From Caecitellus pseudoparvulus (Eukaryota > Protista > Bigyra: Bicosoecida): 64,000 nt of DNA. Below, one piece after another: positions 16,970-42,878 of the stretch. A model generated the notes under the pieces. That model ran no database searches, was not told the origin of the DNA, and saw nothing but the letters and a program-made list of their open reading frames with translations. Positions within the stretch are counted from its first letter, which is position 1, and the number at the start of each line of letters is the position of its first letter. The DNA lies in the NCBI GenBank assembly GCA_965644315.1, contig CBFFRQ010000078.1, positions 1-64,000 on the forward strand. The letters run 5' to 3'. A program made the translations under genes and the position numbers.

Positions 16970-17327
16970 GGTGCCGCTGGCTCTGCCGTGCGTGCACTGG
17001 CGTTTCACGTGGCCGGCAGTGCAGCGCCTCGAAGCGCACAAGCTGCAGGGGGCGCGCCTTGCCTGGCACCGCGGGCCTCAAGCACTGTACGTCTGCTGTG
17101 CTGTGAGGGCGAGGCCTGTGGTGTTTGGGGTTTTGCTTGTCAGTTGCGTACGCACGCGGCAGCAGTGAGGGCCGCTCCGCAGTGTGCGTGCGACGTCACT
17201 TTCCACCCCGCCACTGCACACCCACCCGTCTGCCAGGTACTCCCCCGGCCTGTGCACTCCACGCAGCACCCACGTGCCGCACACGCACGGCAGGCGCCCC
17301 CCCCCTCCCCGGGCAGAACCCTGCACC
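16970..17327. promoter_or_regulatory. Short divergent intergenic region, probable bidirectional promoter between RPT4 and Tudor-SN
   Basis: The inferred ATGs at 16969 (-) and 17328 (+) are separated by 358 bp head-to-head. No specific element identified. Confidence 0.5.
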
Positions 17328-20300
17328 ATGCAAGGTGCGCTCAGCCACACCGCCCTTGAAGCGCTGCGCTCGGCAGACGTACACACCCCCCCCGCCGGCC
17401 CCTCCCATGCGCAGGCTTTGGCACCGTCAAGGCCGTGCTCAGCGGCGACACCGTCGTGCTGCTGGGCAACGCACCAGCTGGCAAGCGCCCCGCTGAGCTG
17501 CAGCTGAGCCTGGCCAGCCTGCAGGCGCCTCGCGTGTCCAGACACCCCAATGCGGCAGACGAGCCCTTTGGCTGGGCTGCCCGGGAGTTCCTGCGCAAGC
17601 TCGTTATCGGCCGCCCCGTCAAGTTCAAAGTGGAGTACTCCAACTCCTCCGGGCGCAAGTTCGGCGCCCTGTGGCTGCACAAGCCAGCGGCCGGTGAACC
17701 GACAGAGAACTTGGCCGTCACTGTCGCCCAGGCTGGCTGGGCCACTGTCGTCCCCGAAGCCGCCAGCAAGTTCGGCAAGAGCGGGGTGAGTGCGCCGGCA
17801 CTGCGCGTGGCGTTTCGCCGCGCGTTTCACCCCGCCATGTCAGTACCTTGGGCAGGCAATGCCTCGCCCAGGGGCGCCTGCCTCGACTAGCCCTGCACGT
17901 TTTCCGCTCTCTTGGTGCCTTTACAGGACTATGAGGCCATCGAGGCTGCTGCCGCCGCTGCAACTGCCGCTGGGCTGGGCCTGCACACGAGCGACGCCGC
18001 GCTGAAGGAGGCGACAGCCAGCCGCACGATTCAGTGGAAGCCCGAAGACCCTGCCGCCCTGGCCAAGGACCTGAAGGGCAAGGAGATCCCTGCCATCGTG
18101 GAGCAGGTCCGCGACGGCACCTGCCTGCGGTGCTACGTGCCCAGCATTGGCGTCATGGTAACGGTGCTGCTGGCTGGCGCTGCCGCACCACGTGTCGCAT
18201 ACGGCGCAGCAGCCTCAGGCGGCAAGTCCGACGCGGCGGCCCCTGCACCTGGCAGTGCAGCTGCCAAGGTGGCCGGCGGCAGTGGCGGTGGCGCCGCGTC
18301 CGGTCAGGCGCCGTTCGCGCTGGAGGCTGCCTTTTTCACAGAGAGCCGGCTGCTGCACCGCGACGTGACGTTGGTGGTGGGCGGCGCAGACAAGTTCCAC
18401 AACCTCGTCGGGCGCGTGGTGGTGCCACAGGGCGACATCTCCGCCGCCCTGCTCAAGGCAGGCCTCGCACGCGTCGCAGCGTGGAGCCTGCCCTTCACCA
18501 CGCCCGCCCACGGCGCCAGTCTGGCTGCCGCCGAGTCAGGCGCCAAAGCCTCCAAGCTGCGCCTGTGGGCGGGGTACACGGAACCCACCATCCAGGGCGC
18601 GAAACGCTTCACGGGCATGGTGCAGGAGGTGGTGTCAGGGGACTGCGTGGTGGTGAAGCCCACCGGCGCCGCTGCCCGGCGCATTTACCTGGCATCTGTC
18701 CGGGCACCCCGCCTCGCGGGGCGCTCCGGTAAGGACGAGCCGTGGGCACGGGAGGCGAAGGAGTTCCTGCGCAAGGCCCTCATCGGCCGCGTGGTGACTG
18801 TGGTGGTGGACTACACGCGCGACCCGCCACCTGGCAGCTCAGCCCAGGAGGTGCGTGCGCACGGCACCCTCACCACCACCTCCCGCAAGGGCGACCCTGT
18901 CAACGTCAGCGTGGACCTCGTGACTGCGGGGCTGGCTGAGTTGGCACGGCACCGCTCCGACGACCCCCGCGCCGCCTGCTACGAGGCTCTGCTGTTGGCC
19001 GAAGGCGAGGCCAAGGAGAAGAAACGCGGCCTGCACAGCGGCAAGAAGCCCTCCAGCCGACCACCCTTTGACATGTCTGGCGCCACCCCCGCCCAGGCTA
19101 AGGAGCAGCTGCCCTTCCTGCAGCGGGGGGGCGACCTCACCGCCATCGTGGACTACGTCTTCTCAGGGCACCGCTTCAAGCTCACCGTGCCCAAGCAGAA
19201 CGTGTCTCTCATCATGGCAGTCAGCGGCGTCAAGTGCCCCCACGCGCCCCGCCCGGGTCAGGCACCCGCCCCTCTGCCCACTGCCAAGGCCGCAGCTGGG
19301 GCAGCGGCAGCGGAGGCCGCTGGCGGGGCACCGTCCGAGGGTCGCCCCAGTGGTGGTGGCGGTGGTGGTGGGCGCGCACCTGAGCCGTGGGGTGCCGAAG
19401 CACGCACCTTTGCGCTGGAGAACTTGATGCAGCGCGAGGTGACGGTGCGTGTGGAGACGCTGGACCGCAACGGCAACGCACTGGGACACCTGTGGGTGGG
19501 CCACGGCGCCTCCAAGTCTCTGTGGGCGTGCGAGCTGCTGAACCTGGGTTTCGCGCAGACCATCCCTGCGGCAGCGGAGCGGTCCGACTTCGCCGCTGAG
19601 CTGTTCGCAGCGGAGGACGCAGCCAAGTTGGGGCGCAAGGGCATCTGGTACGCGCACGACCCTGCCGCTGCCGCCGCCGCCGCAGCCGCCAAGGCCAAGG
19701 CTGAGGGCGCCGTGGGCGACGGCGAGTCGGCCTTCCTGGGCATCACCGTGGTGGACGTGCAGAGCGGTGACTCCTTCGCCGCCCACGCCGACAGTGACTT
19801 GGAGGCGCTGGCGGCGGTGGAGGGCGCCCTGCGAGACATGAAGGCGGCCCACGGCACAGCGGGCGGCGTGCTGCCGTCGCCCCTGAAGCGGGGCTCCATG
19901 ATCGCTGCGCTGTTCGACGAGGGCAGTGGGCCCACCTGGTTCCGCGCTCGAGTCAACGACAGCCACATGGTGGACCTGCCCGACGGCAAGAAGGGCTACG
20001 ACCTTACCTTCATCGACTACGGCAACAGCGGCGTCCTGCCACTGTCCGCGCTGCGGGCACTGGACAACGTGCCCGCCCTGCTCACCACGCCGCCCGTGGC
20101 ACGCCTCTTCCGCCTGGCCTATGTCAAGGCGCCAGGTGTGGAGACGCAGTGGGGGCAGGCGGCAGGCCTGGCCCTGTCCCAGGCCGTCATGGGCCGCAAG
20201 CTCATCGCCAAGGTGTACACGCGGGAGGCAGAGACGAACCGCCTGGTGGCATCGCTGTTCGACGAGGCGGACCCCGTGTCTGTGAACGAGAACTTGCTGC

Positions 20301-20521
20301 GGCAGGGCCTGGTGCGCCTGGCCAAGCGTGAGTACCGCGCAGGCAAGGCGCGTGCCCAGGCGGCAGCGTCGCGGTCAGGCCCCGTCGGCGCCAACGCTGC
20401 TGACGAGTTGGACTTCCTGGCCCTGCTGTCCAAGGCTCAGGAAGAGGCGCGAGCAGGCCATGTGTCCATGTGGGTGCACGGCGACGTCGCGGACTCGGAC
20501 GACGAGCCGTCCCGAGCGTGA
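17328..20521 (+). CDS. SND1: Tudor staphylococcal nuclease (SND1/p100). Exons 17328-17334, 17415-17785, 17927-20521, ~990 aa
   Basis: Four SNase domains (GTVKAVLSGDT..DEPFGWAAREFLRK; IVEQVRDG; VQEVVSGD..EPWAREAKEFLRK; IVDYVFSGHRFK) and a Tudor domain (WFRARV..FIDYGN). GT-AG introns 17335-17414 and 17786-17926 give a total of 2973 nt, in frame. Confidence 0.93.
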
Positions 20522-25808: not shown

Positions 25809-25810
25809 GA

Positions 25811-25929
25811 ATCAGCAGTACTCGGGATTCCCGTGTAGTCCCCTACCACAGTACTAACCGAGCTCGGCCCAGCTTGGCTTCCGGGTGCGGAATGGATCCG
25901 GGCATATCCTGGGCGATGTGACCGCTGCT
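25811..25929 (-). rRNA. 5S rRNA: 5S rRNA, copy 1
   Basis: Minus strand AGCAGCGGTCACATCGCCCAGGATATGCCCGGATCCATTCCGCACCCGGAAGCCAAGCTGGGCCGAGCTCGGTTAGTACTGTGGTAGGGGACTACACGGGAATCCCGAGTACTGCTGAT (119 nt). Shows the terminal helix, box-A-like GAAGCCAAGC, and conserved TTAGTACT and GGGAA. Followed by TCTTTTT. Confidence 0.93.
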
Positions 25930-26311
25930 GAGGGTGAGCCACCCGCCACACACCTTGAGGCCGCAGAGCAGACGGCAGGCCCCCAGCAGTGCAGCGGGCG
26001 CCGCACCGGCCCACGTCGCTACACCACACCTCCACCCACGGCCTGGCCCACTGCCTGCCACACCCGCATGGTGGGCCACCCCTGCCATGACGTGCCGTGC
26101 CCATGTGGCTGCAGGGTGTTCGGCGTGTGCAGCCACATGGGCGCAGGCGGCTGACAGGCGGGCGGGCCACGGCATGTGGAGAGTTGGAGTGTAGAATGGT
26201 GGTGGAGGTGAGGTGGGAAGGATGCTGTGTGTGTTGGGTGGTGGGGTGGTGGTGGGTGTGGCGGGGTGGGGCGTCGAGGTGTGTTGGGTGGGCGAGGGGT
26301 GACGAAAAAGA

Positions 26312-26430
26312 ATCAGCAGTACTCGGGATTCCCGTGTAGTCCCCTACCACAGTACTAACCGAGCTCGGCCCAGCTTGGCTTCCGGGTGCGGAATGGATCC
26401 GGGCATATCCTGGGCGATGTGACCGCTGCT
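26312..26430 (-). rRNA. 5S rRNA: 5S rRNA, copy 2
   Basis: Same 119-nt sequence, 501 bp from copy 1. Confidence 0.93.
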
Positions 26431-26815
26431 GAGGGTGAGCCACCCGCCACACACCTTGAGGCCGCAGAGCAGACGGCGAGCCCCCTGCAGTGCAGTGGGC
26501 GCTGCACCGGCCCACGTCGCCACACCACACCTCCACCCACGGCCTGGCCCACTGCCTGCCACACCCGCATGGTGGGCCACCCCTGCCATGACGTGCCGTG
26601 CCCATGTGGCTGCAGGGTGTTCTGCGTGTGCAGCCACATGGGCGCAGGCGGCTGACAGGCGGGCGGGCCACGGCATGTGGAGAGTTGGAGTGTAGAATGG
26701 TGGTGGAGGTGAGGTGGGAAGGATGCTGTGTGTGTTGGGTGGTGGGGTGGGACGGCGAGGTGTGGCGGGGTGGGACGGCGAGGTGTGTTGGGTGGGCGAG
26801 GGGTGACGAAAAAGA

Positions 26816-26934
26816 ATCAGCAGTACTCGGGATTCCCGTGTAGTCCCCTACCACAGTACTAACCGAGCTCGGCCCAGCTTGGCTTCCGGGTGCGGAATGG
26901 ATCCGGGCATATCCTGGGCGATGTGACCGCTGCT
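26816..26934 (-). rRNA. 5S rRNA: 5S rRNA, copy 3
   Basis: Same 119-nt sequence, 504 bp from copy 2. Confidence 0.93.
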
Positions 26935-27395: not shown

Positions 27396-30300
27396 TCAGA
27401 ACACTTCCTTGTGCAGCACGAAGCGAACGTCGCCGCCTGGGTTGCCGGCGCCGGCGTCCTGGTCAGCCAGGCTCGGGCGGCGGCCCTGCAGGCTGCGCAG
27501 CTGGCTGTGCTTCTCGCAGTTCTTCTTCAAGTCCTTGCCAATGACTGGGGCGCCACAGAAGCAGACACCCACGTCTCGGAAGCGGCTGTCACGGCGCGCC
27601 TTGACGTGCTTAAACACTGTGTCCCAATCTGGGCGGCCATTCCACAGCCACACATCCTGCATGCGGTTGCGCGCGTTGTCGGGGTCGCTCATGACTCGGG
27701 CCATGTTCTTGGAGCTGGCTGGCGGGTGGTGCATGGCGGTCATGAGCTGGGCGGGGGAGAAGGGCGCCATGGCCTGCATGGCGGGGGGCAAGCGAGCATT
27801 GTCCTCCAGGGGCGGCACCTTCATGTTGTTGTCCACACGCGTCACGAAGACGTGGATCTCGATGTGGTTCAGGGCGTTGACGTTGCGGGCGGCAATGTCG
27901 CGCGCCCGCTCTGCCTGCAGCTCCGCCAGCAGCTGCACGAACCACTGGAAGGCCCGGATCTCACTCTGGCGGATGACCCAGTAGAAGTACAGCTGCTCGG
28001 GGAAGTGCCCCTTCTTCCACTTGTACCGCAGGACAGCGCGGAGGATGGCGGCGCTAGGGGTGAGGCCGATGCCCGCCCCCACCACGATGCTGGCGTGGTA
28101 GGAGGAGTAGTGCACGCTGGGCGCGGTGTGTGGACCGTCCACCCGGATGAGCTGCTGGCCGTCAGGGCCAGTGAGTTTGCCCACGACACGCTCCCCGCGG
28201 TTGTTGCGCCGGTACAGGACGAAGGGGTACTCGCCGGTGGGATTCATGGTGTTCAGGAGGTCCTTCAGGCGCTCCGTCCAGCCACCCTTGTGCACACGGA
28301 TGTGCAGGGAGACGAAATCCATCATGTCCAGGTCACCCCGCGCGCTGCTGATGGTGAAGGGGTGCCACTCGTTGGCGCTCAGCGTGGGGGCGTTCAGGTA
28401 CACGTACTGCCCCTCCACGAACTGCATGTCGTCGCGGTCGTGGGGCACCCACTCCAGGCACAGGACGGGGTCGATCCACTTCACTGCCCGCAGGTAAATC
28501 TTGCGTGAGCCGCGCTGCACACGCCAGATGCGCTCCAGCACGTAGCCGATCATGGGCACGATGGTCCAGTACACGAACACAGGGCCGTGGAAGACCTGGG
28601 CGATGTAGAACAGCGCGAACATGTTGTGGGAGAACCAGAAGATCTCGTACTGGGCGTGCTTCACCTTGTCGCTGGCGCCGGTGTAGATGAAGAACATGGC
28701 GATGCAGATGAGGGCGCCAGTCACCCAGGGGGCCTTGGGCACAGAGCCGAACCAGGGCGGCGTGAGGGTGTTGGGGAAGATCTCCAGCGTGGCCTGGGCT
28801 GCCATGGAGTAGTTGACGAAGTGTGCCGCGACGTGCCCCACCGCCAGCACGAACACCCACCGGGCGATGAGCTTGTGCAGCAGGATGTTCTTGCGCAGGG
28901 GCACGTACGTGGCGAGAGCAGCAGCGTCACCCGAGCCGCAGCGAATGTTGTTCAGCAGCTTGATGAGCCCGCGCAGCACGGGCAACAGGAGCAGGGCGCA
29001 GTTCAAGTTCAACAGGCCACCGCACACCTTGGCCCACGGCGCCCACTTGCTCAGAGGCTTGACGCACTTGTCGGCGTTGACAGGGTCCTCCAGGCGGCAC
29101 GTGTCGAAGGCTGCTGGCATGCCGTCCACGACCTTGTTCCAGACGATGGCCAGGGTGATGCCCAGCCCCAGGTTCACGCCCACGTACGCCAGTAGCACGA
29201 GCCACTTGCCCACCTCGCCTGCTTCGATCTGCTGGATGAACCACAGGCGCACGCGCTCCAGGTAGGGCTTGCCTGCCAACGCCTTGGCTTCGTCAGAGGC
29301 GGGGGGGCGCCCCCCACCCCGGCGGCGCAGGCTGTTCTCACCCTTGCACTCCTCACCTCGCAGGGTGGCGGTGAGGGCCGTGGCGCCGGTGATGAGCAGG
29401 GCCGTGCCAGCCAGGGCAGAGGCGTAGGACGTGAACATGGGCAGGCTCAGGATGATGTACAGCAGGCCTCGCAGGGGCAGCGCCGCCAAGGCAGACTCGG
29501 TCGGGTTGCACCCGCCGCAGCAGCCGTTGAGCAGGGGGTACCGCAGGGCCGTACCGTATTCGAACAGGTACAGCAGGACGCCCGTGCCGCCCGTGTAGTA
29601 GCCAATGATCTCAGAGGACTGCGAGGCGGCCAGGGCATCGCCCTGTGTCGCCCAGAGCCACGCAGCCACGCCGAAGAGCAGGCACCAGGCCACCGTCATG
29701 TGGGCCATGTTGCGAGCCCAGAAGCCGTACTGCAGCTTGCGCCCCTGGCGCCGAGTGCAGAGGCCCTGCAGGCCGTCCTCCGTCGCAAAGGCGCTGCGGG
29801 CTGCCTTGGCCGAGGCGGCTCGGGTGGCCGTGGCGCCAGGGGGGGAGGCAGCGCCAGCCTGCAGGGGGTTGCCAGAGCCAGCATCTGCCGCACCCGTGAG
29901 CACGGCACCGGAAGCACGGGGCGTGGAGGAGCCGCGGGTGGGGGCTGCAGGTGGCACAGCTGGGCGGGCGCCGTCGGAGGGACGTCCGCCTGCCGACCCC
30001 ACCAGCCGCTCGACGTAGTTGTCAGGCACAGTGCCCTTGTGGCCGTCAGGCGTTTCCGCCGTCCACCACTGCCCGTCCAAGTTGAGTCCGGTGATGATGT
30101 CACCAGCACGCACAGTGAGGTCACCTGCAGTGAAGGCAGGGTGCGGTGTCGCGGGGGTGGGGAGGAGGAGGCGCGTGAGCGGCGGGTGAAGTGCGAGGCA
30201 CGGTGTGCAAGCATCAGCCGGCCACGGCTCAGCACAGGCGCCGGCGAGCAGGGAGGCAGCCCCCGGCGAGATGGCGAGAACACACGACACAGAAGATTGG

Positions 30301-30450
30301 CGCTGGCCACTCCATGTTGCGGCGCCGGCAGCAGCGCGTGCTTGGTCGGGCCTGGCCCGTGCATGGCGTTGGCAGTCGCGGCGACGCCTCACCCTTCGCT
30401 TGCCCTTCGTACGTGTACAGCACACGCAGCTTGACGTTGGAGGAAGACAT
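27396..30450 (-). CDS. NADPH oxidase fusion: SH3, p22phox (cytochrome b558 alpha)-like module, NOX2/gp91phox-like core. Exons 30450-30393 and 30124-27396, 928 aa
   Basis: A phase-1 intron GTGAG...CTGCAG (30392-30125) yields the SH3 LRVLYTYEGQAKGDLTVRAGDIITGLNLDGQWWTAETPDGHKGTVPDNYVERL. NOX motifs: LNLNCALLLLPVLR, heme His pairs HKLIARWVFVLAVGH and HNMFALFYIAQVFHG, VTG, EWHPFTISS, VDGP, GAGIGLTP, YFYWVIR, GRPDW, FCGAP and HKEVF. No EF-hands. Confidence 0.92.
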
Positions 30451-30635: not shown

Positions 30636-31918
30636 TTACATGCGGGCTGTGCTGCCCCCCACGGCGCTGCTTGCCGTGCTGTGCACACGGAGGGGGGCGC
30701 CACCCACTTGCGACACTTGCGCCGCTCTGAAGCGCCGCAGGACGCGGGCGGGCTTGACGTTCAAGAAGTCAGTGGGCAGCAGCTCAGGCACATCGCTGGC
30801 CAGCGCCCGCACGTCGGCTGTGCTGGGCAAGCCCTTCGCCAGCTGCTGCGCGAGGCCTGTCAAGGCAGACGGCACCTCGCCCGGGAAGTGAGCCGCCAAG
30901 GCTTGCTGCAGGGCGGTCACTGCTGCCGCTCGTTTGGCGCGCAGGGACTCCCTGAGGGCCTCCACAGACGCTTGGATGGCTGCCCCGCTGACGTCCTGCG
31001 GCTGTTCTGGGAACAGCGCAGCGGCGTGTTGCAGGACGAAACGCACGTCGGCTAGGCGTGGCACGCCTGCCAGCACGCTGCGCACCATGGCCTCCACCTG
31101 CGGGGGCTCTACCCTGTCAAAGTACACTGCTCGCAGCTTGCTTTCCAGCTGCGTGGACAGCTGCTTCCGTGTGTTGTCGCGCTGCAGGGTTCGCAGCGCC
31201 GCCTGCACTGCGGGCAGGCTGGCTTCCTCCAGGGAGGCCGGGAACAAGCGTGCTGCGTTGCGGATGAGGGTCCTCAAGTCTCGTGGCTGGGGCAGGGCCG
31301 AAGCCACTGCTTGGGTCAGCGCATCAATGCCCTCTGCGCCTTGTGGCGTGTCCGCTGCTTCCGGGTACACTTTCAGCCGCAGTTCCTGCCGCAGCTGGGT
31401 TGCCAGGGATGCGTGCTCCTGGTGGGAGTGCAGCAACCCCATGACGGCCGAGGGGCCACCCTGAGCTGCTGCTGCGCGGGTCGTGGAGTCCATGCGGTCA
31501 AGCGGCAGCTCCAGCTGCACCAGGCGCGGCAGGGCAGAGACCTCGTCAGGCAGGGCGCTGATGAGTGTCTCCCGCAAGTCCAAGTGGCGCAACTTTTTAC
31601 ACTTGCCCACGCTAGGAGGTATGGACATGATGGGGTTCCCATTCAGCCACAGCTCCTCGAGTCTGCCATGGCCGCGCGGGGGAGGGGAGTGCCGGCAGGC
31701 GTTTCTTGGAGTTTCACATGCGAAACGTACGAAGTCAGCTGTCCCAGCGCATCTGGGAGGGTGGTCAGGTTGTTGTGGCCCAAATCCAGCCGAACTAGGC
31801 CCGAGATGGAGAACACTTCCCTCGGAACTCGATCCAGAGCAAGGTGGGGCAAGTGCAAGACGTGGGTTTGGGCCGCTTGCGCCAGCAAGGCCTGCAGGCG
31901 GTGGCTGCCGATCTCCAT
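30636..31918 (-). CDS. Leucine-rich-repeat protein with three C-terminal helical repeats. Exons 31918-31731 and 31662-30636, ~404 aa
   Basis: LRRs LVRLDLGHNNLTTLPDALGQLTS|LEELWLNGNPIMSIPPSVGKCKKLRHLDLRETLISALP, joined across a 68-nt GTACGT...CAG intron. Start codon uncertain. Confidence 0.8.
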
Positions 31919-32029
31919 GCCCCGTAGCGGTTTCGTGGACCTGCTCACGGCGCACGCCACAGAGACGTGAAGCCTGGATGCGCCAGCCACGCATCCTTGC
32001 GTCTGGCTGTGTGAATTGGCAAGGCGGCG

Positions 32030-34493
32030 CTACTGCCCCTCCCACGAGGCCATGTGCCGCAGCTCGCCAGTGACAGCCATGTGGTCCGTCTCATCTTCGA
32101 TAGGCTCCCCGATCAGCTCCTCAATGACGTCTTCCAGCGTGAGCAGGCCCAGCACACGCACGGTGGGCGGCGGCGGCACCCCCTCATCCAGCGCAGCGTT
32201 CAGCTCAGCCACGTTCTCTGTGATGACAGCCATGTGGCTGCGGCCCAGTTGAAACGCATTCAACGCATCAAACATGGGTGTGGCCGGGTGCATGACGAGC
32301 GGGCGCCCCAGGCTCAAGCTGCTGACAGGTGTGCTATCTGTAGGTGGGCGGCAGTGTGCGGTGGCAGGTGGAGTCAGCGCAGGCGGTCGGAGAGTGCAGG
32401 TTGCGGCAACGCACCATCGGGGTCACACTTGATGAGCAACTTGACGATGAGCAGGCCCACGATGCAGTCCCGGCGGCCATTTGCAAAGACTGGCACTCGA
32501 CTATGCGACGACTCCAAGATGTGGCTCATCTGCGCAGGGCGGTGGTTGGGGGGCGGAAATTGTGCGGCGTCGGCAGCAGGTGCAGCCTGCGTATCGCGGG
32601 CCACGCACCACTTCGTCTGAGAGGACGTCCTCGGTGGACAACAAGTACGCCTTGTCCAGGGGAGTCATGCGTGTGAGCACGGTTTTCGAGCGCAGGTCCA
32701 GGGTGGCGCTGATGATGGTCACTTCGTCAGCGCTGAGCATGTGACTTTCCATGTGTGCTTCGCCCTCCTCCTCCCCGCCCTCGTCGGCGCCCGCACCATC
32801 CTGCAGCAGGGGTGTGTTCAACGACGCTGCTTTTTTCTTGTGACTCTTGCGTGTGGCTGAGGCGGCCCCGCCGCTGGCGCCAGGCGCGCCAGATTGCTTC
32901 GCCACCACCAGCATTGCCGCCGCTGGCGCCTTGGCGCCGTCACCCGCTAGGGCGGGCGTGCTGCCTGCCCGGCGCAGCGCCTTGCCTGCCCCCTTGCGTT
33001 CTCGAGACACGGCGTCCACTGCAGCCAGGTACTGTCCCGCGCGCCCCGCCATGCTGACGAGGTTTTTGTGCAGGTCGCGCCCCCGCACCTTGTGCACACC
33101 GTACACGACCCCCCCCTGCCCCGCCCCACCCCGCCCACCACGCGCATCCCACGGCACCACTGTGCCCGTGCCGGCTTGCACACGGGCCAGCGTGGCGGCG
33201 TCAGGCAAGGACGTCTGTCGCGCGATGACGTCAGTGTCGCCACCGCTCTGCATCGGGTGGTCAGTCAGCGCATCCACAGTGGACGAGGCGCCTGCCGGCT
33301 GCACGGGCACGACAGTGTCAGGCGCCGGGCTGTGGGGGGCTGGCTGCAGCTGGCCAGACCCGCCCAGCGGGCGCATGATGCTGCCTGAGCCCTGGAACAC
33401 CGACTGCGGTGCCTGTGCCCGCAGACGCTCAAGCGCGTCACCGTCTGATGCGCTGCGCTGGACAGATGTGACGGGGCCCAGGGCGGTGGGGGCGCCCGTG
33501 TCTGGCCCCGCCTCGCCCTGCTGTCCGGCAGTCTCTGCCGTCACGGCGTGCAGGCGGATGAACTCCTTCAGCTCGTGGCGCTGGAAGCGCAGGCCGTGGT
33601 CGTGTCCCAGCCACCAGTCCAGAAGGGCGGCGATGGGGGCGGCGACGGGGTACATGAGCACCACCACGATGTACATGAGCCACGTCAGGCGTGCCGCGAT
33701 GGCCAGTTGGCTGGGGCCGGTGAAGATGCTGGACGGCAGGATCTCTGAGGTGGGGAGTGGAGTGGGAGTATGTGTGTGGCGGGAGGGGCAGCGAGGCTTC
33801 AGCACGCACCTGCGAAGATGAGCACCGCAGTGACAGACAGGATGATGGCGCCCCAGGACGGCAGGAGCTGGTCCGTGACGAGGGGCAAGGCTTCGTTGGC
33901 GCTGGCGTTGCCCAGCAGCAGCGTCACCAGGGTCAGGTGATGCCTGTCCACGAAAGGCTTCACTGTCTTGGCCATGGCTTGCTGTTCGGGGGTGCCGGAG
34001 GAAATGAGAATCTGAATGTACGTGGGGTCCATGGAGACAAAGCCCATGGTCAAACCTGTGAGCGGCGCGCGTGGAGGGCATGTCACGCAGGCAGCTCGGA
34101 GTGCACTGCTCAAGATGCCTGCGGAATCTGCCCCTCACCGGCCATCGTCCCCGACACAGCCACGAGCAGCACAGTCAGCCCGATGTTGGTCCACCACAGC
34201 GGCGTGAGAGGTTCATGTTCATCAGCCTCGGAAGCTTTCAACGCCCTGGGAGCTGGCGCTGCCTCGCCAGTCCACGTCGCTGGCGCACCTGCGCAGCTGG
34301 TCTCCAGCAGCGGGCACAGCACTCCGGCCTGAGCGGCAGCTTGCAGGGCAGGCAGAGCCAGTTGGCCGGAGGCCGGGCATCCTGGAGACCAAGTCAAGGC
34401 AGAGGCCTCGCACAGGGCCCACTGTGAGGGGCAGGCCAGGAGCTGTGCACAGAGGCCGGCTGTGGCCACTGCCACTGCACCTCCCGCCACCAT
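32030..34493 (-). CDS. CNNM/DUF21-CBS domain metal (Mg2+) transporter, MAM3-like, multi-exon
   Basis: DUF21 motifs VSGTMAG|LTMGFVSMD, HHLTLVTLLLGNASANEALP, AIILSVTAVLIF and EILP. CBS motifs MTPLDKAYLL, SHSRVPV, IVGLLIVK, LNAFQLGRSHMAV and GLLTLEDVIEELIGEPIEDETD. These are spread over several frames separated by short introns. Confidence 0.88.
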
Positions 34494-34589: not shown

Positions 34590-37500
34590 TCAGCGGGGCA
34601 AGCCGCGCCCTGCACCCCCCCTCAGCTGCGCGTTGGACCCCCCCGTGACACCCCTCACCCCCCCCTCCGCCTCCTTGCGCTTGAGCAGCGCGTCCCTCCG
34701 AGCGGCGTACTCCTGCGCCCAGGCCGCGCCCCCCACTTCGTCCCTGTGCACGCCGTCGGACAGCAACCAATCCAGCACTGACTCGTGCAGCACAGTCGTG
34801 GGCTGTCGGCGCAAGGCAGGCACTGGCTGGGCGACGTCAGCCACCCCCTCAGCCTCTTCAGTAGGGTGGCGGGGCGGGAGCCCACCTCGCGGTGCCGGTG
34901 CGCGGCGGCGTGCAGCACCACCCCCCTGAGGGTGGACTGAGGGTGCAGGCGGGGTGGCAGGCCGTGGGGGTGTGGGGCGCTGCCGCACCTCCTCCGCATC
35001 CAGCAGAGTGCCGTCAGCGTGGCGGGGGGGCACGTACGACGGCATCCACACACGCTTGGGCGTGGTGCCCTGGCGTCCTGCACTGGAGGACCGCGAGGAG
35101 GGGGGGGGGACCCCGCCCCCCCGTGTTGGCGTGTGCAGGGGCCGTCGCCGGCGACCCACTGAGTCAGAGCGCGCTCGCGCCCGGCCAGTCACACTGGGTG
35201 CTGCTCGCCGGGTCCGGCGGCCCCGTGTGCCACGGACAGGCTGGCGTCCGCGGCGAGCACCGCCCTCACTCCCCTCCTCGCCACTGCTGCTCCGGGATGC
35301 GGCGTCGGTTCGCCGATGGCGGCGGCGGCGTCCACTCCGCTCTGGCCGCGGCGCCTGGGCGGCAGCGGTGGGGCTGGTGCCCGTTTGCGTGCCTGCCTCT
35401 GCCAGGGGGGCATCTGGCCCCACACCTGCATCCACTCCGACAGAGGCAGCTCGACCAGGGGACGGCCGCGCCATGGGACTCTCGGGCTGTGTCCAGGCCT
35501 GACGAGGGGGCGTGTGCACACTGCCAGACACTGAGCTGGACTCGGACGCTGCCGCCACGCGTTTCAAGTGCCGGTAGCGGGAGATATCGTCCGCTAGGGA
35601 AGCCAGGGACAGGCTCTGGTTCCGGGCGGCGCGCGCGGCCGTGTGTGGCACAGAGATGTCTGGACGGGGTCTGGGCGCCACACGCGGCAGGGCTGTTCCA
35701 GGAACACCGGCATCTGGATCGGCCCCCGCCTCAGCAGTGCTGCTGCGCGGGGGGCTGGGCACAGAGCTGGAGCCAGCCATGCTAGCCACGCTGGCGCACT
35801 CTGCCATGGTGCGGTCGATGCTGGCGATGGCGCCCTCACTTGCCGCAAGGGCTTGCGCGACACGGGCCCCCCACAACAGCCGCTCATCGCCGTCCACGTC
35901 CCCTGTGCCCGCCAGCGGCCCTGCCGTGCGCTGGGGCTGGATGGGGGCGGGACTGCCCCCCGTGTCCTCGCCCCCCACCGGACTGCGCACCATGCCCTGC
36001 AGCTCCTCCGTGGACGCCACTTGCTGGGCAGGGGACGCCACGGCAATGGCCCGGATGAAGGCGCGAGGGTCCACGCCGCCAGCACCGGCGCCACTCGCAC
36101 GGGGCGGGAAGAAGGCGCCCTTTGAGCTGGACGTCGCGGCAGGTGGCACGGTGCCCGGCACGGTGGTCGGCCTGGCAGGAGCCAGCCCCGCCAGGGGTCG
36201 TCTGGAGGCGGGGGGCGGCGAGCTGCGGCCGTCGCTGTCCTCTGGCTGGGCGGCTGGGCGTGGTGGGGAAGCAGTCTGGTCTCCGTGGCGTTGACTTTGC
36301 TCGGGCGTGACGGGCGCATGCTCCGGATCCCGCCCCACGCTGGCCATGGCCGCATCCAGGGCTGCCAGCGTGCCAGCCAACTCCGCATGCTCCGCCCCAT
36401 CAGCCCCCTGCGACCCCGGCGACGCGTGCGATAGAGCTGACACTGACGAATCCAGCAGGCTCGTGGCGGCTGACTCCTGCGCCGCCTTCCGAGCGGACAG
36501 TCTGGCCACTTGCCCCTGCAGCTCCTCCACCAGCCGCGCCAGCACACCGCGCTCGGCCACCAGGCGCCGCACACCCACCTCCATCGCAGCTTTCTCTGCT
36601 GTCGCCTCGGCCACAGCACTCTGCAGCCGGCTGTTGTCTTCCAGCAGCGAGCTGTGCACACCCACGAGCGACGCATGAGCCTCGCCCGTCCGCTCCAACT
36701 CTGACTCCGTGGCCAGCAGGTGCTGCCCCAGCGACGACAACTGCTCCCGCACAGCCGCCAGTCCCTCCTCGGAAATGTGCAGTGCCGCCCGCAGCTGCAT
36801 GCTCTCGTCGGCATCTGCGTCGGAAAGGATGGACCGCGCGAAACTCGACGCGTCTGGCCCAGACAACGCGTCGTCCCAGCTCGCCTCCATCCCAGAACGG
36901 GCAGCCCGCCCCGCCAATGCTGCGTGCGCCTCGGCAAGTTGGCGTGTCAGCTCCGCTTTCTCCGCAGCAAGGGCAGCGTGGCGTGCCTTGTGGGCTTGCA
37001 CTGCAGCAGTGACGCCCTGCACATGTGCTGTCAGCTGCGAGAACTGTTGTCGGGCTGTGTCGCGCTCGACGCGCAGCTCCTCAGCTCGCGCCTTCTGTGC
37101 TGCGGCAGAATCAGCGGCACCGGACTCAGCCAGCTGCAATTGTTCACGGGCCAAAGCCAGTTGCTGTTCTGCAAGGATGCGGCCCTGCTCTGCCTCGCGA
37201 AGCGCGCTGGCTGTGCGAGCAGCGGTTTGCATGGCAAGTGTGGCTTCATGCTGCGCAGCGTGGAGTGCGTCTTGCAACTGCTGGGGGGAGGGCCGCCCGC
37301 TTGCACTTTGCGGCCCCTCCGAGGCACTGCTGTCTGATTTGGCTCCTTGCGCCTCCAGCTCAGCGATCCGCTCCTGAGCGGAGGCAAGTCTAGCACTGGC
37401 GTCTTCGTGTGCCAGCGCAGCCTGTTCCTGCGCAACCCTGAGCTGCTCCTGGACAGCCTCGTGCTCATGCTGCAAAGTTGCGTGGTCCGCACGCAAAGCT

Positions 37501-40500
37501 GCAACCAGGGCCGCTTGCGAGGTGGCCATTTGGTCCTGGTCCGCACAGCGATCATTGAGCTCCCGCACTTTGCCCTTCAACTGCTCGACAACTCCGAGGC
37601 TATCCTGCAACTGTGGCAGCACTTGTTGCAAGCTGTTGTGGTTCGCAGTCGCTTCCTGCTGGGCCCGCTCCAGGTCTTGAAAGCACGCAGCGTGGCTTGC
37701 TTGCGCCGCTTTCACCTCCTCCTGCGCCTGCACCAGTTGCTGCCCGAGCCAGTCTCGCTCTTGCTGCACACTGGCCAGTTGGGATTCTGCCACCTCGGCT
37801 CGCATGCTGGCGGCTCGCTCGTCGTCTCGGCTTGGGCTTTGCACCGACTCAGCGGACTCCAATGCCTCGCGAAGGTGCTCAACAGTCCTTTGCTCCTGAA
37901 GCAGGTCGGCATTGGTCTCTTCCAGTGTGTGCGACAAGCTAGCGACGTGGTCCTCAGCAGTGGAGGCTCGACGCAGCGCAGCATCCAGTTGCTGCAAAAG
38001 GCTTGTGTCGTGCGTGTCATGCGCAGGGGATGCGCCCTGCCCCGCGCCTGTGCTGCTGTGTGGCGCAGACAACAGCCGCACCCGCTCTTCTTCGCTTGCC
38101 ATGAGCGCGCATTCCAGTCGCTCGGCCCGAGCCGCGCCCTCAGATCGCACCATTCGCGTCTGGGAAGTGGACGTTGCGATCCTTCCTCGCAGGTCGTGCG
38201 CTGTAGCCTCCAGAGTTGCGATGCGGGCTCTCAAGCGCTCATTCAACTGCATCATTTCAACTTTGTCACCCTGTGCAGTGGCAACACGCTCCTCCAACAA
38301 GTCCACTTCGTCCTGGATGGCACGGCAGCGAGCCTCAGACCGCACAGCTGCTTGTTGCGCGGCAGTCTGAGCCACGAGCAGTGCGCGAACCGCAAGTCGC
38401 GCTCGGTCCACCAGGCTTTCCAAGACCGACAGCGCCGACGAATCACCCGAAGCGGCAAGTTCTTCTCCCTCCTCTCCGTGCGTGTCACCGTCCAACTCAT
38501 GGGGATGGTGCCCGTCCGTCGCCACCTCCCTCACAGCCTGCACGGTACCCTCCACCTCCAGCAACCACTCCCGCAGGCGGTGCTCAAGAGTTGGAAGGGA
38601 CGCTGACACTTGGCGGACGTCAGCAGACAAAGCAGCGTGATCTTCCAGCGCAGCCTGCAGACGCCCCACCCTTGCCTCAACCTGGGAACACACAGCCACC
38701 ACACTTGTCTTACCATGTTGCCCCGCGCTTTCATCAGCAGAGACGCCGAGGCTGTTCAGCATGTGCACAGCTGAGACACCTACGCTGCGCATACACGTTC
38801 TCGCAGCTTCCACCTCCTCCGCCAGCGCGTCACGCTCCCCCTCCACCTCAACCACACGTGCCTGCAGCGCCGACACCGCCTCAGACTCCGACCCACGCAG
38901 ACCCGCCACCTCCTCCGCCAGCGCGTCACGCTCCCCCTCCACCTCAACCACACGTGCCTGCAGCGCCGACACCGCCTCAGACTCCGACCCACGCAGACCC
39001 GCCACCTCCTCCGCCAGCGCGTCACGCTCCCCCTCCACCTCAACCACACGTGCCTGCAGCGCCGACACCGCCTCAGACTCCGACCCACGCAGACCCGCCA
39101 CCTCCTCCGCCAGCGCGTCACGCTCCCCCTCCACCTCAACCACACGTGCCTGCAGCGCCGACACCGCCTCAGACTCCGACCCACGCAGACCCGCCACCTC
39201 CTCTGCCAGCGCGTCACGCTCCCCCTCCACCTCACCCACACGTGCCTGCAGCGCCGACACCGCCTCAGACTCCGACCCACGCAGACCCGCCACCTCCTCC
39301 GCCAGCGCGTCACGCTCCCCCTCCACCTCACCCACGCGTGCCTGCAGCGCCGACACCGCCTCAGACTCCGACCCACGCAGACCCGCCACCTCCTCTGCCA
39401 GCGCGTCACGCTCCCCCTCCACCTCACCCACGCGTGCCTGCAGCGCCGACACCGCCTCAGACTCCGACCCACGCAGACCCGCCACCTCCTCCGCCAGCGC
39501 GTCACGCTCCCCCTCCACCTCAACCACACGTGCCTGCAGCGCCGACACCGCCTCAGACTCCGACCCACGCAGACCCGCCACCTCCTCCGCCAGCGCGTCA
39601 CGCTCCCCCTCCACCTCAACCACACGTGCCTGCAGCGCCGACACCGCCTCAGACTCCGACCCACGCAGACCCGCCACCTCCTCCGCCAGCGCGTCACGCT
39701 CCCCCTCCACCTCAACCACGCGTGCCTGCAGCGCCGACACCGCCTCAGACTCCGACCCACGCAGACCCGCCACCTCCTCCGCCAGCGCGTCACGCTCCCC
39801 CTCCACCTCACCCACGCGTGCCTGCAGCGCCGACACCGCCTCAGACTCCGACCCACGCAGACCCGCCACCTCCTCCGCCAGCGCGTCACGCTCCCCCTCC
39901 ACCTCAACCACACGTGCCTGCAGCGCCGACACCGCCTCAGACTCCGACCCACGCAGACCCGCCACCTCCTCCGCCAGCGCGTCACGCTCCCCCTCCACCT
40001 CAACCACACGTGCCTGCAGCGCCGACACCGCCTCAGACTCCGACCCACGCAGACCCGCCACCTCCTCCGCCAGCGCGTCACGCTCCCCCTCCACCTCAAC
40101 CACACGTGCCTGCAGCGCCGACACCGCCTCAGACTCCGACCCACGCAGACCCGCCACCTCCTCCGCCAGCGCGTCACGCTCCCCCTCCACCTCACCCACG
40201 CGTGCCTGCAGCGCCGACACCGCCTCAGACTCCGACCCACGCAGACCCGCCACCTCCTCCGCCAGCGCGTCACGCTCCCCCTCCACCTCAACCACACGTG
40301 CCTGCAGCGCCGACACCGCCTCAGACTCCGACCCACGCAGACCCGCCACCTCCTCCGCCAGCGCGTCACGCTCCCCCTCCACCTCAACCACGCGTGCCTG
40401 CAGCGCCGACACCGCCTCAGACTCCGACCCACGCAGACCCGCCACCTCCTCCGCCAGCGCGTCACGCTCCCCCTCCACCTCAACCACACGTGCCTGCAGC

Positions 40501-42878
40501 GCCGACACCGCCTCAGACTCCGACCCACGCAGGCCCGCCACCTCCTCCGCCAGCGCGTCAAGCTCCCCCTCCACCTCAACCACGCGTGCCTGCAGCGCCG
40601 ACACCGCCTCAGACTCCGACACACGCAGGCCCGCCACCTCCTCCGCCAGCGCGTCACGCTCCCCCTCCACCTCAACCACACGTGCCTGCAGCGCCGACAC
40701 CGCCTCAGACTCCGACCCACGCAGACCCGCCACCTCCTCCGCCAGCGCGTCACGCTCCCCCTCCACCTCAACCACACGTGCCTGCAGCGCCGACACCGCC
40801 TCAGACTCCGACCCACGCAGACCCGCCACCTCCTCCGCCAGCGCGTCACGCTCCCCCTCCACCTCAACCACACGTGCCTGCAGCGCCGACACCGCCTCAG
40901 ACTCCGACCCACGCAGCTGCGCTAGGAGATCTTTCTGCGATGCTATGGTTGCTTCGCGCTCGTGGCGCTGTGCGCGCTCGGATGCGAGCTCCTTCTGCAG
41001 TGTTGCTGCTGTCTGCTCAACTTCAACGAGTTTACAGCGCTGTGACGTGAAGGCCGAGTTGCTCGATTCTGCTGCCTGTTTCTGGTCCCGGACAACACCC
41101 TTGAGTTGCTGTATCCTTTCCATGTTCTTGATGTCTGCCTCACGCATTGAACGTATTTCTGCGCGAAGTTGCTCTTGAGCCGTCGTTGCAGCTTGCAAGG
41201 CAGTCTGGGCCAGCTCAGCCTGCTCCGAGTGGCGCCTGGCCTCCACATTCAGGTCTTTGATTTTCTGCTGCAGTTCCGTGTGCACCCCTCGCGCTGTCGA
41301 CACCTCATCTTCCAGTTCTTGGCATCGTTGTTGCGAATGCACCGCTGCTTGAACGCGAGGCAAAGAGGTTCGCCGCAGCTGCTCCAGGCTCTGCTGGTTC
41401 AACAGTCCACTTGCATCGTCCAGGTGCTCACTACCCACTCCTACCGCAGCTGAAAAGGCCAGCAGAGCGCTGCATGCGAATGCGTACCGTCCTTCAAGCT
41501 CACTCTTTGCTGATCGGCAGTCCTTCAAGTCTTGCTGAGCCAGAGACAGTTTGCTCTGTGCGTCTGATAGCTGTGCTGCTTGCTCAATGTGTTGCAAGGC
41601 CTGCTCGTCACCATCACTTCGGGCAAGGGAAGCGGCGTGTCGCGCATGCTCAACTTGGGTCTGCAAATCAGCCACTTGCGACTCCAAGGCTGACACGCGA
41701 GCCACATGGGCAGAGTTTTCATGCTTCAAAGTCGCATTTAGTTTGACCACGGCCGCATGCTTCTCTTCCAACTGCGCCACAACCGTCGCTTGCGATTCTA
41801 TCTGCCGCTGCATGTGGCTGCGCTCGTGTTCAGCACTGGTCTGATGCTCCTCTATTGCTGGATGCACCTGGGCTGACTCCGCGCCACCCTGCTGCACCTG
41901 TTCCCTCGCTGCCGCCAAGTCCTTGCTCAGGCGCTCACGCTGCGCCTGCAGTGCCTCGATGCGCGACGCAGCCTCGGTCATGGCTTGCCCGTGCTCCTTC
42001 CGACGGGCGTGTTCTGCGAGGAGGGCAGTTTTCAGGCGCTTGCAGCGGCTTCTCCAAGCCCGCATTTCACCTTTGTAGTCCCTGCCGACAACGGAGCCAA
42101 CGGACGATGGCGCAACGCTCGTAGCACTGGAGCCAATGCCAATGACTGAACCGGGGACAGAGTGCGGCGGAATGACTGGGGGATCAATGACCTCATCCTC
42201 CGCCTCAGACCCGCCGTCAGACTGCGCTAGGGCCGCTGCTGGCTCGGGAGGTGCACCAGACCGCGCTCGCCGCCTGTCAGCGGGCGGCGTCCGCACCGCC
42301 TCCACCCTGGCCTTGATGGACGCCAGACGCAGGCTCGTGCTGGTGCCTGCGTCAGAACTTGCAACACGCTGCAGGAGGGCAGCCGAGGCATTGGACAGTC
42401 GGACACCCTTGGACGTCACCACCTGGCCAGAATCGTCCCGCGCCGAGTACGTGGTGTACAGGGAGCCACGGGAAGTGTCCAAGCCGGCATGCCCCACCCG
42501 CTGCTGAGCTGCCCCTACCCCAGAGCCGGAAGACATGGTGCTGCTTCCTCCGAGCGACAGCGTCCTTGCCCCGTCGACGGACTCCAAGCGTGAAATGGCC
42601 GACAGTGCTGCCTGAGAGCCAGCGGCGGGCAAATGCCTCGGAGGTGCAGCCGAAGCAGCATGCTGCATGCCATGGGCACGTTCATGCAGACGCTGAAGTG
42701 AATGCAAAGCGTGTCTTGTGCTGGCCGCGCCTGCGCGCGAGCTGGCCTCGCTGCTGCCGCCGTGGCCGTTGGAGCCACGAGACTGAGAGCTGCCACTGCC
42801 AGCCACTGTGATGCGGATGCTGCCTGAACGGTGCAGCTCGATCCGCGCAGGTGACGCCTCTTCAGTGATAAACGACAT
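34590..42878 (-). CDS. Giant coiled-coil protein (2762 aa) with a central 32-aa tandem repeat and low-complexity termini
   Basis: Long stop-free ATG-initiated frame, E/A/L/Q/R-rich heptad-like sequence on both sides of the repeat. Confidence 0.8.
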   Translation of the reverse strand: MSFITEEASPARIELHRSGSIRITVAGSGSSQSRGSNGHGGSSEASSRAGAASTRHALHSLQRLHERAHGMQHAASAAPPRHLPAAGSQAALSAISRLESVDGARTLSLGGSSTMSSGSGVGAAQQRVGHAGLDTSRGSLYTTYSARDDSGQVVTSKGVRLSNASAALLQRVASSDAGTSTSLRLASIKARVEAVRTPPADRRRARSGAPPEPAAALAQSDGGSEAEDEVIDPPVIPPHSVPGSVIGIGSSATSVAPSSVGSVVGRDYKGEMRAWRSRCKRLKTALLAEHARRKEHGQAMTEAASRIEALQAQRERLSKDLAAAREQVQQGGAESAQVHPAIEEHQTSAEHERSHMQRQIESQATVVAQLEEKHAAVVKLNATLKHENSAHVARVSALESQVADLQTQVEHARHAASLARSDGDEQALQHIEQAAQLSDAQSKLSLAQQDLKDCRSAKSELEGRYAFACSALLAFSAAVGVGSEHLDDASGLLNQQSLEQLRRTSLPRVQAAVHSQQRCQELEDEVSTARGVHTELQQKIKDLNVEARRHSEQAELAQTALQAATTAQEQLRAEIRSMREADIKNMERIQQLKGVVRDQKQAAESSNSAFTSQRCKLVEVEQTAATLQKELASERAQRHEREATIASQKDLLAQLRGSESEAVSALQARVVEVEGERDALAEEVAGLRGSESEAVSALQARVVEVEGERDALAEEVAGLRGSESEAVSALQARVVEVEGERDALAEEVAGLRVSESEAVSALQARVVEVEGELDALAEEVAGLRGSESEAVSALQARVVEVEGERDALAEEVAGLRGSESEAVSALQARVVEVEGERDALAEEVAGLRGSESEAVSALQARVVEVEGERDALAEEVAGLRGSESEAVSALQARVGEVEGERDALAEEVAGLRGSESEAVSALQARVVEVEGERDALAEEVAGLRGSESEAVSALQARVVEVEGERDALAEEVAGLRGSESEAVSALQARVVEVEGERDALAEEVAGLRGSESEAVSALQARVGEVEGERDALAEEVAGLRGSESEAVSALQARVVEVEGERDALAEEVAGLRGSESEAVSALQARVVEVEGERDALAEEVAGLRGSESEAVSALQARVVEVEGERDALAEEVAGLRGSESEAVSALQARVGEVEGERDALAEEVAGLRGSESEAVSALQARVGEVEGERDALAEEVAGLRGSESEAVSALQARVGEVEGERDALAEEVAGLRGSESEAVSALQARVVEVEGERDALAEEVAGLRGSESEAVSALQARVVEVEGERDALAEEVAGLRGSESEAVSALQARVVEVEGERDALAEEVAGLRGSESEAVSALQARVVEVEGERDALAEEVEAARTCMRSVGVSAVHMLNSLGVSADESAGQHGKTSVVAVCSQVEARVGRLQAALEDHAALSADVRQVSASLPTLEHRLREWLLEVEGTVQAVREVATDGHHPHELDGDTHGEEGEELAASGDSSALSVLESLVDRARLAVRALLVAQTAAQQAAVRSEARCRAIQDEVDLLEERVATAQGDKVEMMQLNERLRARIATLEATAHDLRGRIATSTSQTRMVRSEGAARAERLECALMASEEERVRLLSAPHSSTGAGQGASPAHDTHDTSLLQQLDAALRRASTAEDHVASLSHTLEETNADLLQEQRTVEHLREALESAESVQSPSRDDERAASMRAEVAESQLASVQQERDWLGQQLVQAQEEVKAAQASHAACFQDLERAQQEATANHNSLQQVLPQLQDSLGVVEQLKGKVRELNDRCADQDQMATSQAALVAALRADHATLQHEHEAVQEQLRVAQEQAALAHEDASARLASAQERIAELEAQGAKSDSSASEGPQSASGRPSPQQLQDALHAAQHEATLAMQTAARTASALREAEQGRILAEQQLALAREQLQLAESGAADSAAAQKARAEELRVERDTARQQFSQLTAHVQGVTAAVQAHKARHAALAAEKAELTRQLAEAHAALAGRAARSGMEASWDDALSGPDASSFARSILSDADADESMQLRAALHISEEGLAAVREQLSSLGQHLLATESELERTGEAHASLVGVHSSLLEDNSRLQSAVAEATAEKAAMEVGVRRLVAERGVLARLVEELQGQVARLSARKAAQESAATSLLDSSVSALSHASPGSQGADGAEHAELAGTLAALDAAMASVGRDPEHAPVTPEQSQRHGDQTASPPRPAAQPEDSDGRSSPPPASRRPLAGLAPARPTTVPGTVPPAATSSSKGAFFPPRASGAGAGGVDPRAFIRAIAVASPAQQVASTEELQGMVRSPVGGEDTGGSPAPIQPQRTAGPLAGTGDVDGDERLLWGARVAQALAASEGAIASIDRTMAECASVASMAGSSSVPSPPRSSTAEAGADPDAGVPGTALPRVAPRPRPDISVPHTAARAARNQSLSLASLADDISRYRHLKRVAAASESSSVSGSVHTPPRQAWTQPESPMARPSPGRAASVGVDAGVGPDAPLAEAGTQTGTSPTAAAQAPRPERSGRRRRHRRTDAASRSSSGEEGSEGGARRGRQPVRGTRGRRTRRAAPSVTGRARARSDSVGRRRRPLHTPTRGGGVPPPSSRSSSAGRQGTTPKRVWMPSYVPPRHADGTLLDAEEVRQRPTPPRPATPPAPSVHPQGGGAARRRAPAPRGGLPPRHPTEEAEGVADVAQPVPALRRQPTTVLHESVLDWLLSDGVHRDEVGGAAWAQEYAARRDALLKRKEAEGGVRGVTGGSNAQLRGGAGRGLPR
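38810..40917 (-). repeat. 96-bp coding minisatellite, ~22 near-identical copies (LRGSESEAVSALQARVVEVEGERDALAEEVAG)
   Basis: gccacctcctccgccagcgcg recurs every 96 bp (38905, 39001, ...). Only isolated substitutions (V/G, R/L, G/V). Confidence 0.97.

Follow-up and report, generated by a model that had tools for sequence, protein, structure and literature searches.

A single-chain fusion of SH3, p22phox-like and NADPH oxidase domains in Caecitellus pseudoparvulus and other SAR protists

Structure of the gene and its oxidase core

The window analysed here is a 64,000-nt stretch of Caecitellus pseudoparvulus DNA (GCA_965644315.1, contig CBFFRQ010000078.1, positions 1-64,000), and the gene of interest, with all of its features described below, lies on the minus strand at positions 30450-27396. 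This one spliced gene joins an SH3 domain, a four-helix membrane domain homologous to p22phox and a full NADPH oxidase (NOX) core. It consists of two exons, 30450-30393 (58 nt) and 30124-27396, which together encode 928 aa. Exon 1, of 19 codons plus 1 nt, supplies the ATG and the opening strand of the SH3 domain, and the 268-nt intron (30392-30125, GT..AG) interrupts this domain. By chance, the intron contains no stop codon in the frame of exon 2, and the database models of 964 and 1028 aa read through it.

The intron has been removed in contigs of two RNA-derived assemblies, X14 (an RNA library) and X1. One spliced X1 contig (record 6) joins 30608-30389 to 30120-29098 and comprises exon 1, the SH3 domain, the linker, the four-TM segment and NOX TM1, and overlapping X1 records reach the 3' end of the gene with a single gap of 66 nt; this transcript evidence consists of assembled contigs, not long reads. 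The locus is also contained, unspliced, in an independent DNA contig of 11.4 kb (X15). Exon 2 is one open frame in which the four-TM segment runs without a stop into the NOX core, as the sequence-only reading of this DNA had stated, and its proposal of a single transcript is borne out from the SH3 domain to NOX TM1, with the four-TM segment retained. An assembly chimera, or two neighbouring genes read as one, is practically inconceivable: it is excluded by the contigs together with the single frame, and the same fusion is present in 78 database sequences.

Exon 2 (908 aa) was used as the query for searches and fold prediction. Its Pfam matches were SH3, Ferric_reduct, FAD_binding_8 and NAD_binding_6, the last two over cut-off; this order had been expected from the sequence, and only the Cytochrom_B558a (PF05038) match expected after SH3 was not reached by exon 2. 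The six-TM bis-heme domain (28509-29213) contains the heme histidines at 28877, 28835, 28628 and 28589, i.e. exon-2 positions 416/430 and 499/512 with spacings of 14 and 13, which are the equivalents of His101, His115, His209 and His222 and are invariant in 58-59 family members. The equivalent of His119 is H434 (28823), those of Thr178-Gly179 are T468-G469 (28721; exon-2 numbering), and the T of the TXXT motif lies at 28682. The FAD-binding domain (28128-28505) has an HPFT motif and a conserved family-specific insert ahead of its VDGP motif, and the NADPH-binding domain (27396-28127, with the stop at 27396) has GxGxxP, GRPxW, FCG and terminal ExF motifs and a family insert of ~60 residues. In the family alignment, these two conserved inserts cover ~39 and ~63 positions, compared with 19 and 20 in NOX2, respectively. 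The core is thus complete, with its heme histidines, TM4 TG motif and FAD and NADPH domains recovered by Pfam and alignment as first read.

In the AlphaFold model, the core contains six helices, which together with the four helices of the preceding segment make up the ~10 TM helices that had been predicted. No EF-hand was matched by Pfam in exon 2 or in family members, in agreement with the earlier reading, and identity with an EF-hand NOX is thereby excluded. The best structural and profile matches of the core were NOX2, NOX5 and DUOX. Its fold matches NOX2 best (Z 25.8; Foldseek E 6e-25), and the profile scores of NOX2 and NOX5 are nearly tied (300 vs 296 bits). The core also shows NOX5-like features, namely a Lys-x-x-Gly in TM2 and a pre-TM1 helix.

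The Pfam label of the TM domain, Ferric_reduct, would suit a ferric or cupric reductase that carries an additional membrane domain and does not generate superoxide, and yeast YNO1-type exceptions indicate that the motifs separating the two classes are not absolute (PMC3591440). Such a reductase is nevertheless very unlikely. His101, His119, Thr178 and Gly179 distinguish ROS-making NOX from metal reductases (PMC3591440), and all four are conserved across the family (58/58, 59/59, 54/59 and 59/59, respectively). The closest structures and profiles are those of NOX2, NOX5 and DUOX, and in its own genome, where the gene is present in a single copy beside other FRD-family genes, the FRE-like genes look different.

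Homology of the four-helix domain to p22phox

The four-TM domain (29346-29738) is preceded by a disordered Pro/Ala/Ser-rich linker (29739-30008; pLDDT < 50 over most of its length) with one class II PxxPxR motif, and is followed by a basic cytosolic linker and an amphipathic pre-TM1 helix (29223-29345). Its colinearity with human p22phox (CYBA), originally noticed by eye, was reproduced by profile and structure searches. The segment alone did not match p22phox in single-sequence Pfam, phmmer and PDB searches; a word-based homologue search found only the protein itself with the segment region and nothing with the alignment as the query, and an Atlas structure search with the segment returned generic bundles only. 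A profile built from 48 four-TM segments of the family and searched against all PDB sequences matched residues 4-131 of human p22phox with 50 bits (E 2e-12), the next match having an E-value of 0.2. The AlphaFold model of the segment consists of four helices with a pLDDT of 92, and its top three Foldseek matches were all p22phox (TM 0.62-0.65, E 4e-3). A wide VIA search also placed p22phox first, with a Z of 12.2 (rmsd 2.6 Å over 107 residues; next match Z 8.7), Z values below about 13 being weak on their own for helical bundles. Furthermore, the Pfam cut-off for Cytochrom_B558a (25 bits) is exceeded by one member of the family, P0090, at 27.5 bits, with SH3 before this match and Ferric_reduct behind it, and Cytochrom_B558a was weakly matched in 3 of the 48 segments.

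The residues W (29720), G (29672), E (29561), R (29471) and E (29354) correspond to W9, G25, E53, R90 and E129 of p22phox. The columns of W9, G25, E53 and E129 are invariant or nearly so in the family, and R90 is present in half of the members. The spacings are identical to those in p22phox: 16 residues for W9-G25 (45/46 sequences), 14 for G39-E53 (49/49) and 39 for R90-E129 (46/51). The core polar network of p22phox is formed by N11, E53, R90, H94 and Y121, among which E53, R90 and H94 are also sites of chronic granulomatous disease (CGD) mutations (PMC9711523). The family consensus at these five positions is H, E, R, Y or H, and Y or N, respectively, with E53 kept in 46/49 sequences, R90 in 25/51, H94 as Y/H in 38/51, N11 as H in 29/46 and Y121 as Y/N in 27/51; the C. 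pseudoparvulus protein has R, E, R, Y and A.

The proline-rich stretch at the C terminus of p22phox is absent from the family, where its place is taken by a basic linker of 12-73 aa with almost no PxxP (78 sequences), and the domain was therefore classed as p22phox-like rather than canonical p22phox. No separate p22 was found by searches of the C. pseudoparvulus genome; EROS was not matched there either, a result that is uninformative. The domain is homologous to p22phox, and orthology is likely, though not proven.

The doubt on orthology arises because p22phox belongs to the same clan as Flower/Tvp18/COPI_assoc, from which language-model searches do not separate it. Flower/Tvp18 (PF10233), Tvp15/COPI_assoc (PF08507), TMEM72 and DUF7727 share the four-helix architecture, the Glu ending TM2 and the Arg/Lys starting TM3, but are standalone Golgi or vesicle proteins with no NOX fusion, and the SAR fusion members score below their cut-offs. 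One of these clan members (Flower/Tvp18 or Tvp15/COPI_assoc) may have been recruited independently, as a trafficking tag or as a convergent stabiliser of a NOX5-grade core. ESM features rank p22phox no higher than Flower/Tvp18 (0.88 vs 0.89/0.88; 0.82 vs 0.85), weak Pfam matches of individual members are scattered among DUF7727, Cg6151-P, COPI_assoc and Cytochrom_B558a, no Flower/Tvp18 match over cut-off was found elsewhere in the C. pseudoparvulus genome, and the Lys-x-x-Gly and pre-TM1 helix of the core would also fit such a recruitment. It is, however, rather unlikely, because the sole curated cut-off passed by any member is that of Cytochrom_B558a, the broad Cg6151-P and COPI_assoc models reach at most about 21 bits on members, the p22-type ends (N-terminal aromatic-x-x-Trp-Ala and C-terminal Arg-Gly-Glu) are in exact register, and the fusion partner is the one protein family that p22phox is known to partner. 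In the clan comparison, which covered COPI_assoc genes of the same genome by profile and Flower/Tvp18 by ESM features and Pfam models only, the COPI_assoc clan members scored ≤13 bits with the 48-member profile, vs 50 for p22phox (hhalign 25% and 2%).

In NOX2, TM1 and TM4 of p22phox bind TM3-TM5, with Trp9 and Gln13 bonding to the TXXT motif, and the p22phox site is the one that is filled in DUOX1 by the S0 helix (PMC9568551). The p22phox-like domain of the fusion is probably docked at the same site of its own core. The exon-2 model has a pTM of 0.80 over 908 aa despite ~100 disordered residues, which exceeds what the 605-residue core alone could give, so in this model the four-TM domain must be held in a fixed position on the core. 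When the model is superposed on five DUOX1 entries, the alignment begins at model residue ~161, within the four-TM domain, vs DUOX1 residue ~587 in the S0 helix. The equivalent of Trp9 is kept in 38/46 sequences and that of Thr191 is T or S in 49/59; the two covary weakly, tending to be lost together (Fisher p 0.02, not phylogeny-corrected). Other residues of the NOX2-p22phox interface (T194, Q13, E124, W106, Y201 and W131) are not kept in the family.

The fusion family, its SH3 domain and related oxidases

The fusion is not peculiar to this protist, but belongs to a SAR-wide family. In a homologue search with the protein, about 58 relatives outranked the first EF-hand NOX5. They came from Cafeteria, Incisomonas, Triparma, Hondaea, Mucochytrium, Chrysophaeum, Pelagophyceae, Aureococcus and numerous environmental contigs, and an HMMER search with the four-TM region added the chlorarachniophyte Amorphochlora. 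In total, about 50 distinct proteins carry the fusion. They belong to bicosoecids, MAST-3, labyrinthulids, Parmales, pelagophytes and one chlorarachniophyte, and their database names are generic; none from diatoms or oomycetes was among the relatives in a search scoring 8000 candidates. The four-TM segment lies directly ahead of the core in every full-length member. Both parts are present in 78 sequences (including cluster duplicates), and those with one part only are fragments or belong to a diverged WW subclade. The cores form one clade separate from NOX5 in a quick tree of 62 rows (SH-aLRT 99), which was built without NOX1-4, bird duplicates of NOX5 and cluster duplicates; its subclades track known stramenopile groups. 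The four-TM-NOX fusion is thus an invariant trait of a SAR protein clade, and the suggestion of a p22-type NOX partner beyond Amorphea is supported for stramenopiles and a rhizarian.

The SH3 domain is less constant. Its remainder in exon 2 (30009-30124; Pfam SH3_9, E 1e-6) is of a generic type, with Crk-like proteins, CIN85 and myosin I as the best PDB matches and a resemblance also to Grb2; p47phox and p67phox were absent from the best 60 PDB matches. It is carried by the bicosoecid, MAST-3, Parmales and rhizarian members, but is missing upstream of the genes of Hondaea, Chrysophaeum and P0038 and in other members, and is replaced in one subclade by WW domains or proline-rich sequence. The domain had been described as a built-in organizer, which would activate the oxidase in cis in the manner of p47phox. 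Its fusion in many members, both stramenopile and rhizarian, the PxxPxR motif behind it in the C. pseudoparvulus protein and the SH3 of a Naegleria NOX (PMC3591440) are in keeping with such a role. Pfam detected one SH3 only, with neither the PX domain nor the tandem SH3 of the p47phox/NOXO1 layout, and the proline-rich p22 tail, which is bound by the organizer and conserved in animal and choanoflagellate p22 (PMC2121648), is gone, the linker behind TM4 being almost free of PxxP. An organizer, moreover, does no more than recruit an activator, and the fusion lacks any activator domain. An organizer function in cis is accordingly quite unlikely, the p47-type organizer was rejected on these features, and with its loss from several members the SH3 fits best with an optional role in targeting.

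Among known systems, human flavocytochrome b558 (NOX2/gp91phox plus p22phox/CYBA; PDB 8gz3, 7u8g and 8wej) resembles the fusion in its NOX fold, its catalytic residues, its lack of EF-hands and its four-helix p22 domain with W9, G25, E53, R90 and E129 in register. The fusion differs in being one chain instead of two, in its N-terminal SH3 and missing p22 proline-rich tail, in keeping half of the TXXT motif, and in its short extracellular loops C and E and its two longer conserved dehydrogenase inserts. NOX4-p22phox and the fungal NoxA-NoxD(Pro41), likened here by description only, also pair an EF-hand-less NOX with a p22-type membrane partner, but are opisthokont systems encoded by separate genes; NOX4 works without an organizer (PMC9421330). 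NOX5, RBOH and NoxC share with the fusion the single chain, the pre-TM1 helix and the core similarity (296 bits), whereas the fusion has SH3, linker and four TM helices where these have EF-hands, and forms a separate clade in the quick tree.

The algal preNOX proteins with 10-11 TM helices (Chondrus, diatoms and possibly the 11-TM NOX of Chattonella) are likewise free of EF-hands and found in stramenopiles. In these proteins, the four additional helices are placed between the FAD and NADPH domains, and His119 is missing (PMC3591440), whereas in the fusion the extra helices are N-terminal and His119 is invariant; identity with preNOX was excluded on these two grounds. PMC6685483 does not give the location of the extra helices in the Chattonella NOX. 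Naegleria NoxA (model M17, Zhang et al. 2013) also has an SH3 fused to an EF-less protist NOX, but within the NADPH domain, and a p22-like domain is not reported for it.

Proposed mechanism and significance

In animals, the membrane subunits of the NADPH oxidase, NOX2 and p22phox, are made as separate proteins. In NOX enzymes, electrons from NADPH travel through FAD and then two hemes to O2, and superoxide is released to the outside or into a lumen. The C. pseudoparvulus protein is probably a single-chain flavocytochrome b558. By analogy with the NOX family, its core would draw electrons from cytosolic NADPH and hand them to O2 along the same route of FAD and two hemes, yielding extracellular or luminal superoxide. 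Model and conservation together suggest that the four-TM domain folds back against TM3-TM5 of the core to which it is fused, in the way that p22phox binds NOX2 in trans, that its N-terminal Trp contacts a Thr/Ser of loop D, and that the tethered domain may support folding, heme maturation and stability of the core in cis.

With neither EF-hands nor a p22 proline-rich tail, the enzyme would have no direct Ca2+ switch and no p47phox-type bis-SH3 switch. It is most likely constitutive, or switched by partners at the two family-specific inserts of the dehydrogenase domain, i.e. NOX4-like rather than NOX2-like, regulatory surfaces being the likeliest role of these inserts. The most likely function of the optional SH3 (WW or proline-rich sequence in one subclade) is to bring the enzyme to a proline-rich scaffold of cytoskeletal or endocytic type. 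ROS might then be produced locally, either at the surface of the cell or within food vacuoles, which is the least certain step. A role in killing prey is a guess, because osmotrophic labyrinthulids and photosynthetic pelagophytes also have the fusion.

In published surveys, p22phox is restricted to opisthokonts, apart from a disputed amoebozoan copy. Massari et al. consider it a late substitute for EF-hands confined to opisthokonts (PMC9421330), no NOX regulatory subunit was seen in Chromista (PMC2121648), and no paralogue of p22 has been reported (PMC9568551). Zhang et al. include the algal 10-TM preNOX and the Naegleria SH3-NOX in their domain survey, both unlike the fusion (PMC3591440). Full-text literature, with most subscription papers excluded, yielded no account of a naturally occurring p22phox-NOX fusion or of any p22phox in SAR. 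We lean slightly towards the view that the four-TM domain is a true p22phox orthologue, that the NOX-p22 pair predates the Amorphea/SAR split and arose near the last eukaryotic common ancestor, and that SAR keep an undescribed single-chain flavocytochrome b558 without EF-hands, p47phox or the p22 proline-rich tail.

The presence of a p22-NOX fusion in stramenopiles and a rhizarian challenges the late, opisthokont-only timeline of p22phox, and connects p22phox with the clan of Flower/Tvp18. The conserved columns of the family include several sites of CGD mutations (G25, E53 and R90), and a natural one-chain NOX-p22 offers a simple system for the effects of p22 on the catalytic core besides p47phox docking. 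In abundant marine protists, among them pelagophytes that form blooms, the fusion is also a candidate source of extracellular superoxide made independently of Ca2+.

Surroundings of the NOX gene

Directly upstream, the NOX gene is adjoined by an LRR gene in the same orientation (30636-32045, minus strand), and this LRR-then-NOX order is also present in P0002, a relative at 69% identity (locus L027, 1292-2338). On the other side, a tandem array of three 5S rRNA genes with a period of approximately 500 nt (25810-26934, minus strand) begins 460 nt 3' of the NOX stop codon.

The window also contains housekeeping genes for the RNA polymerase second-largest subunit, a proteasome AAA ATPase, and Tudor-SN (11274-20521), together with two very long ORFs and a third ORF of 2762 aa. 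In the Pfam search, the 3710-aa ORF (1-11133, plus strand) had no match, and only the N-terminal FG-GAP repeats were recognised in the 4343-aa ORF (46000-59031, minus strand). The 2762-aa ORF (34590-42878, minus strand) likewise had no Pfam match and includes 22 near-identical repeats of 96 nt (32 aa) each at 38810-40916. The 18S rRNA of this genome is short (1697 nt; L023, G000:C81).

Domain variants and other NOX-like genes

The fusion family includes a subclade (P0054-P0057; locus L017) with a WW domain at the N-terminus, an arm that is very rich in proline, and another WW domain inserted into the NADPH domain, at the site where the Naegleria NOX instead carries an SH3 (PMC3591440). By eye, residues 1-113 of the Triparma member P0012 seem to form a putative second, degenerate SH3 preceding the scored one.

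A tandem pair of NOX genes was found on a 244-kb environmental contig (L018, 5001-8630 and 11231-13630), the first of which is a long-branch family member lacking SH3. This genome contains a further NOX-like gene (L004, G000:C43) with a Thr-Gly motif and long inserts, located just downstream of an EF-hand gene.

Probable and possible misattributions in database entries

The core of P0110 (CAE7444470.1), labelled 'noxA [Symbiodinium sp. KB8]', is identical to the NOX protein of the window, and the Symbiodinium sp. KB8 assembly therefore probably contains this stramenopile. The P0110 gene model (1028 aa) reads through the NOX intron as coding sequence. The family member P0013, labelled 'Ectocarpus fasciculatus', is nested within environmental sequences and is a possible contaminant.

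The p22phox clan

In both profile and language-model searches, p22phox, Flower/Tvp18, COPI_assoc, TMEM72, and DUF7727 surfaced together, whereas p22 has been described as having no paralogues (PMC9568551).
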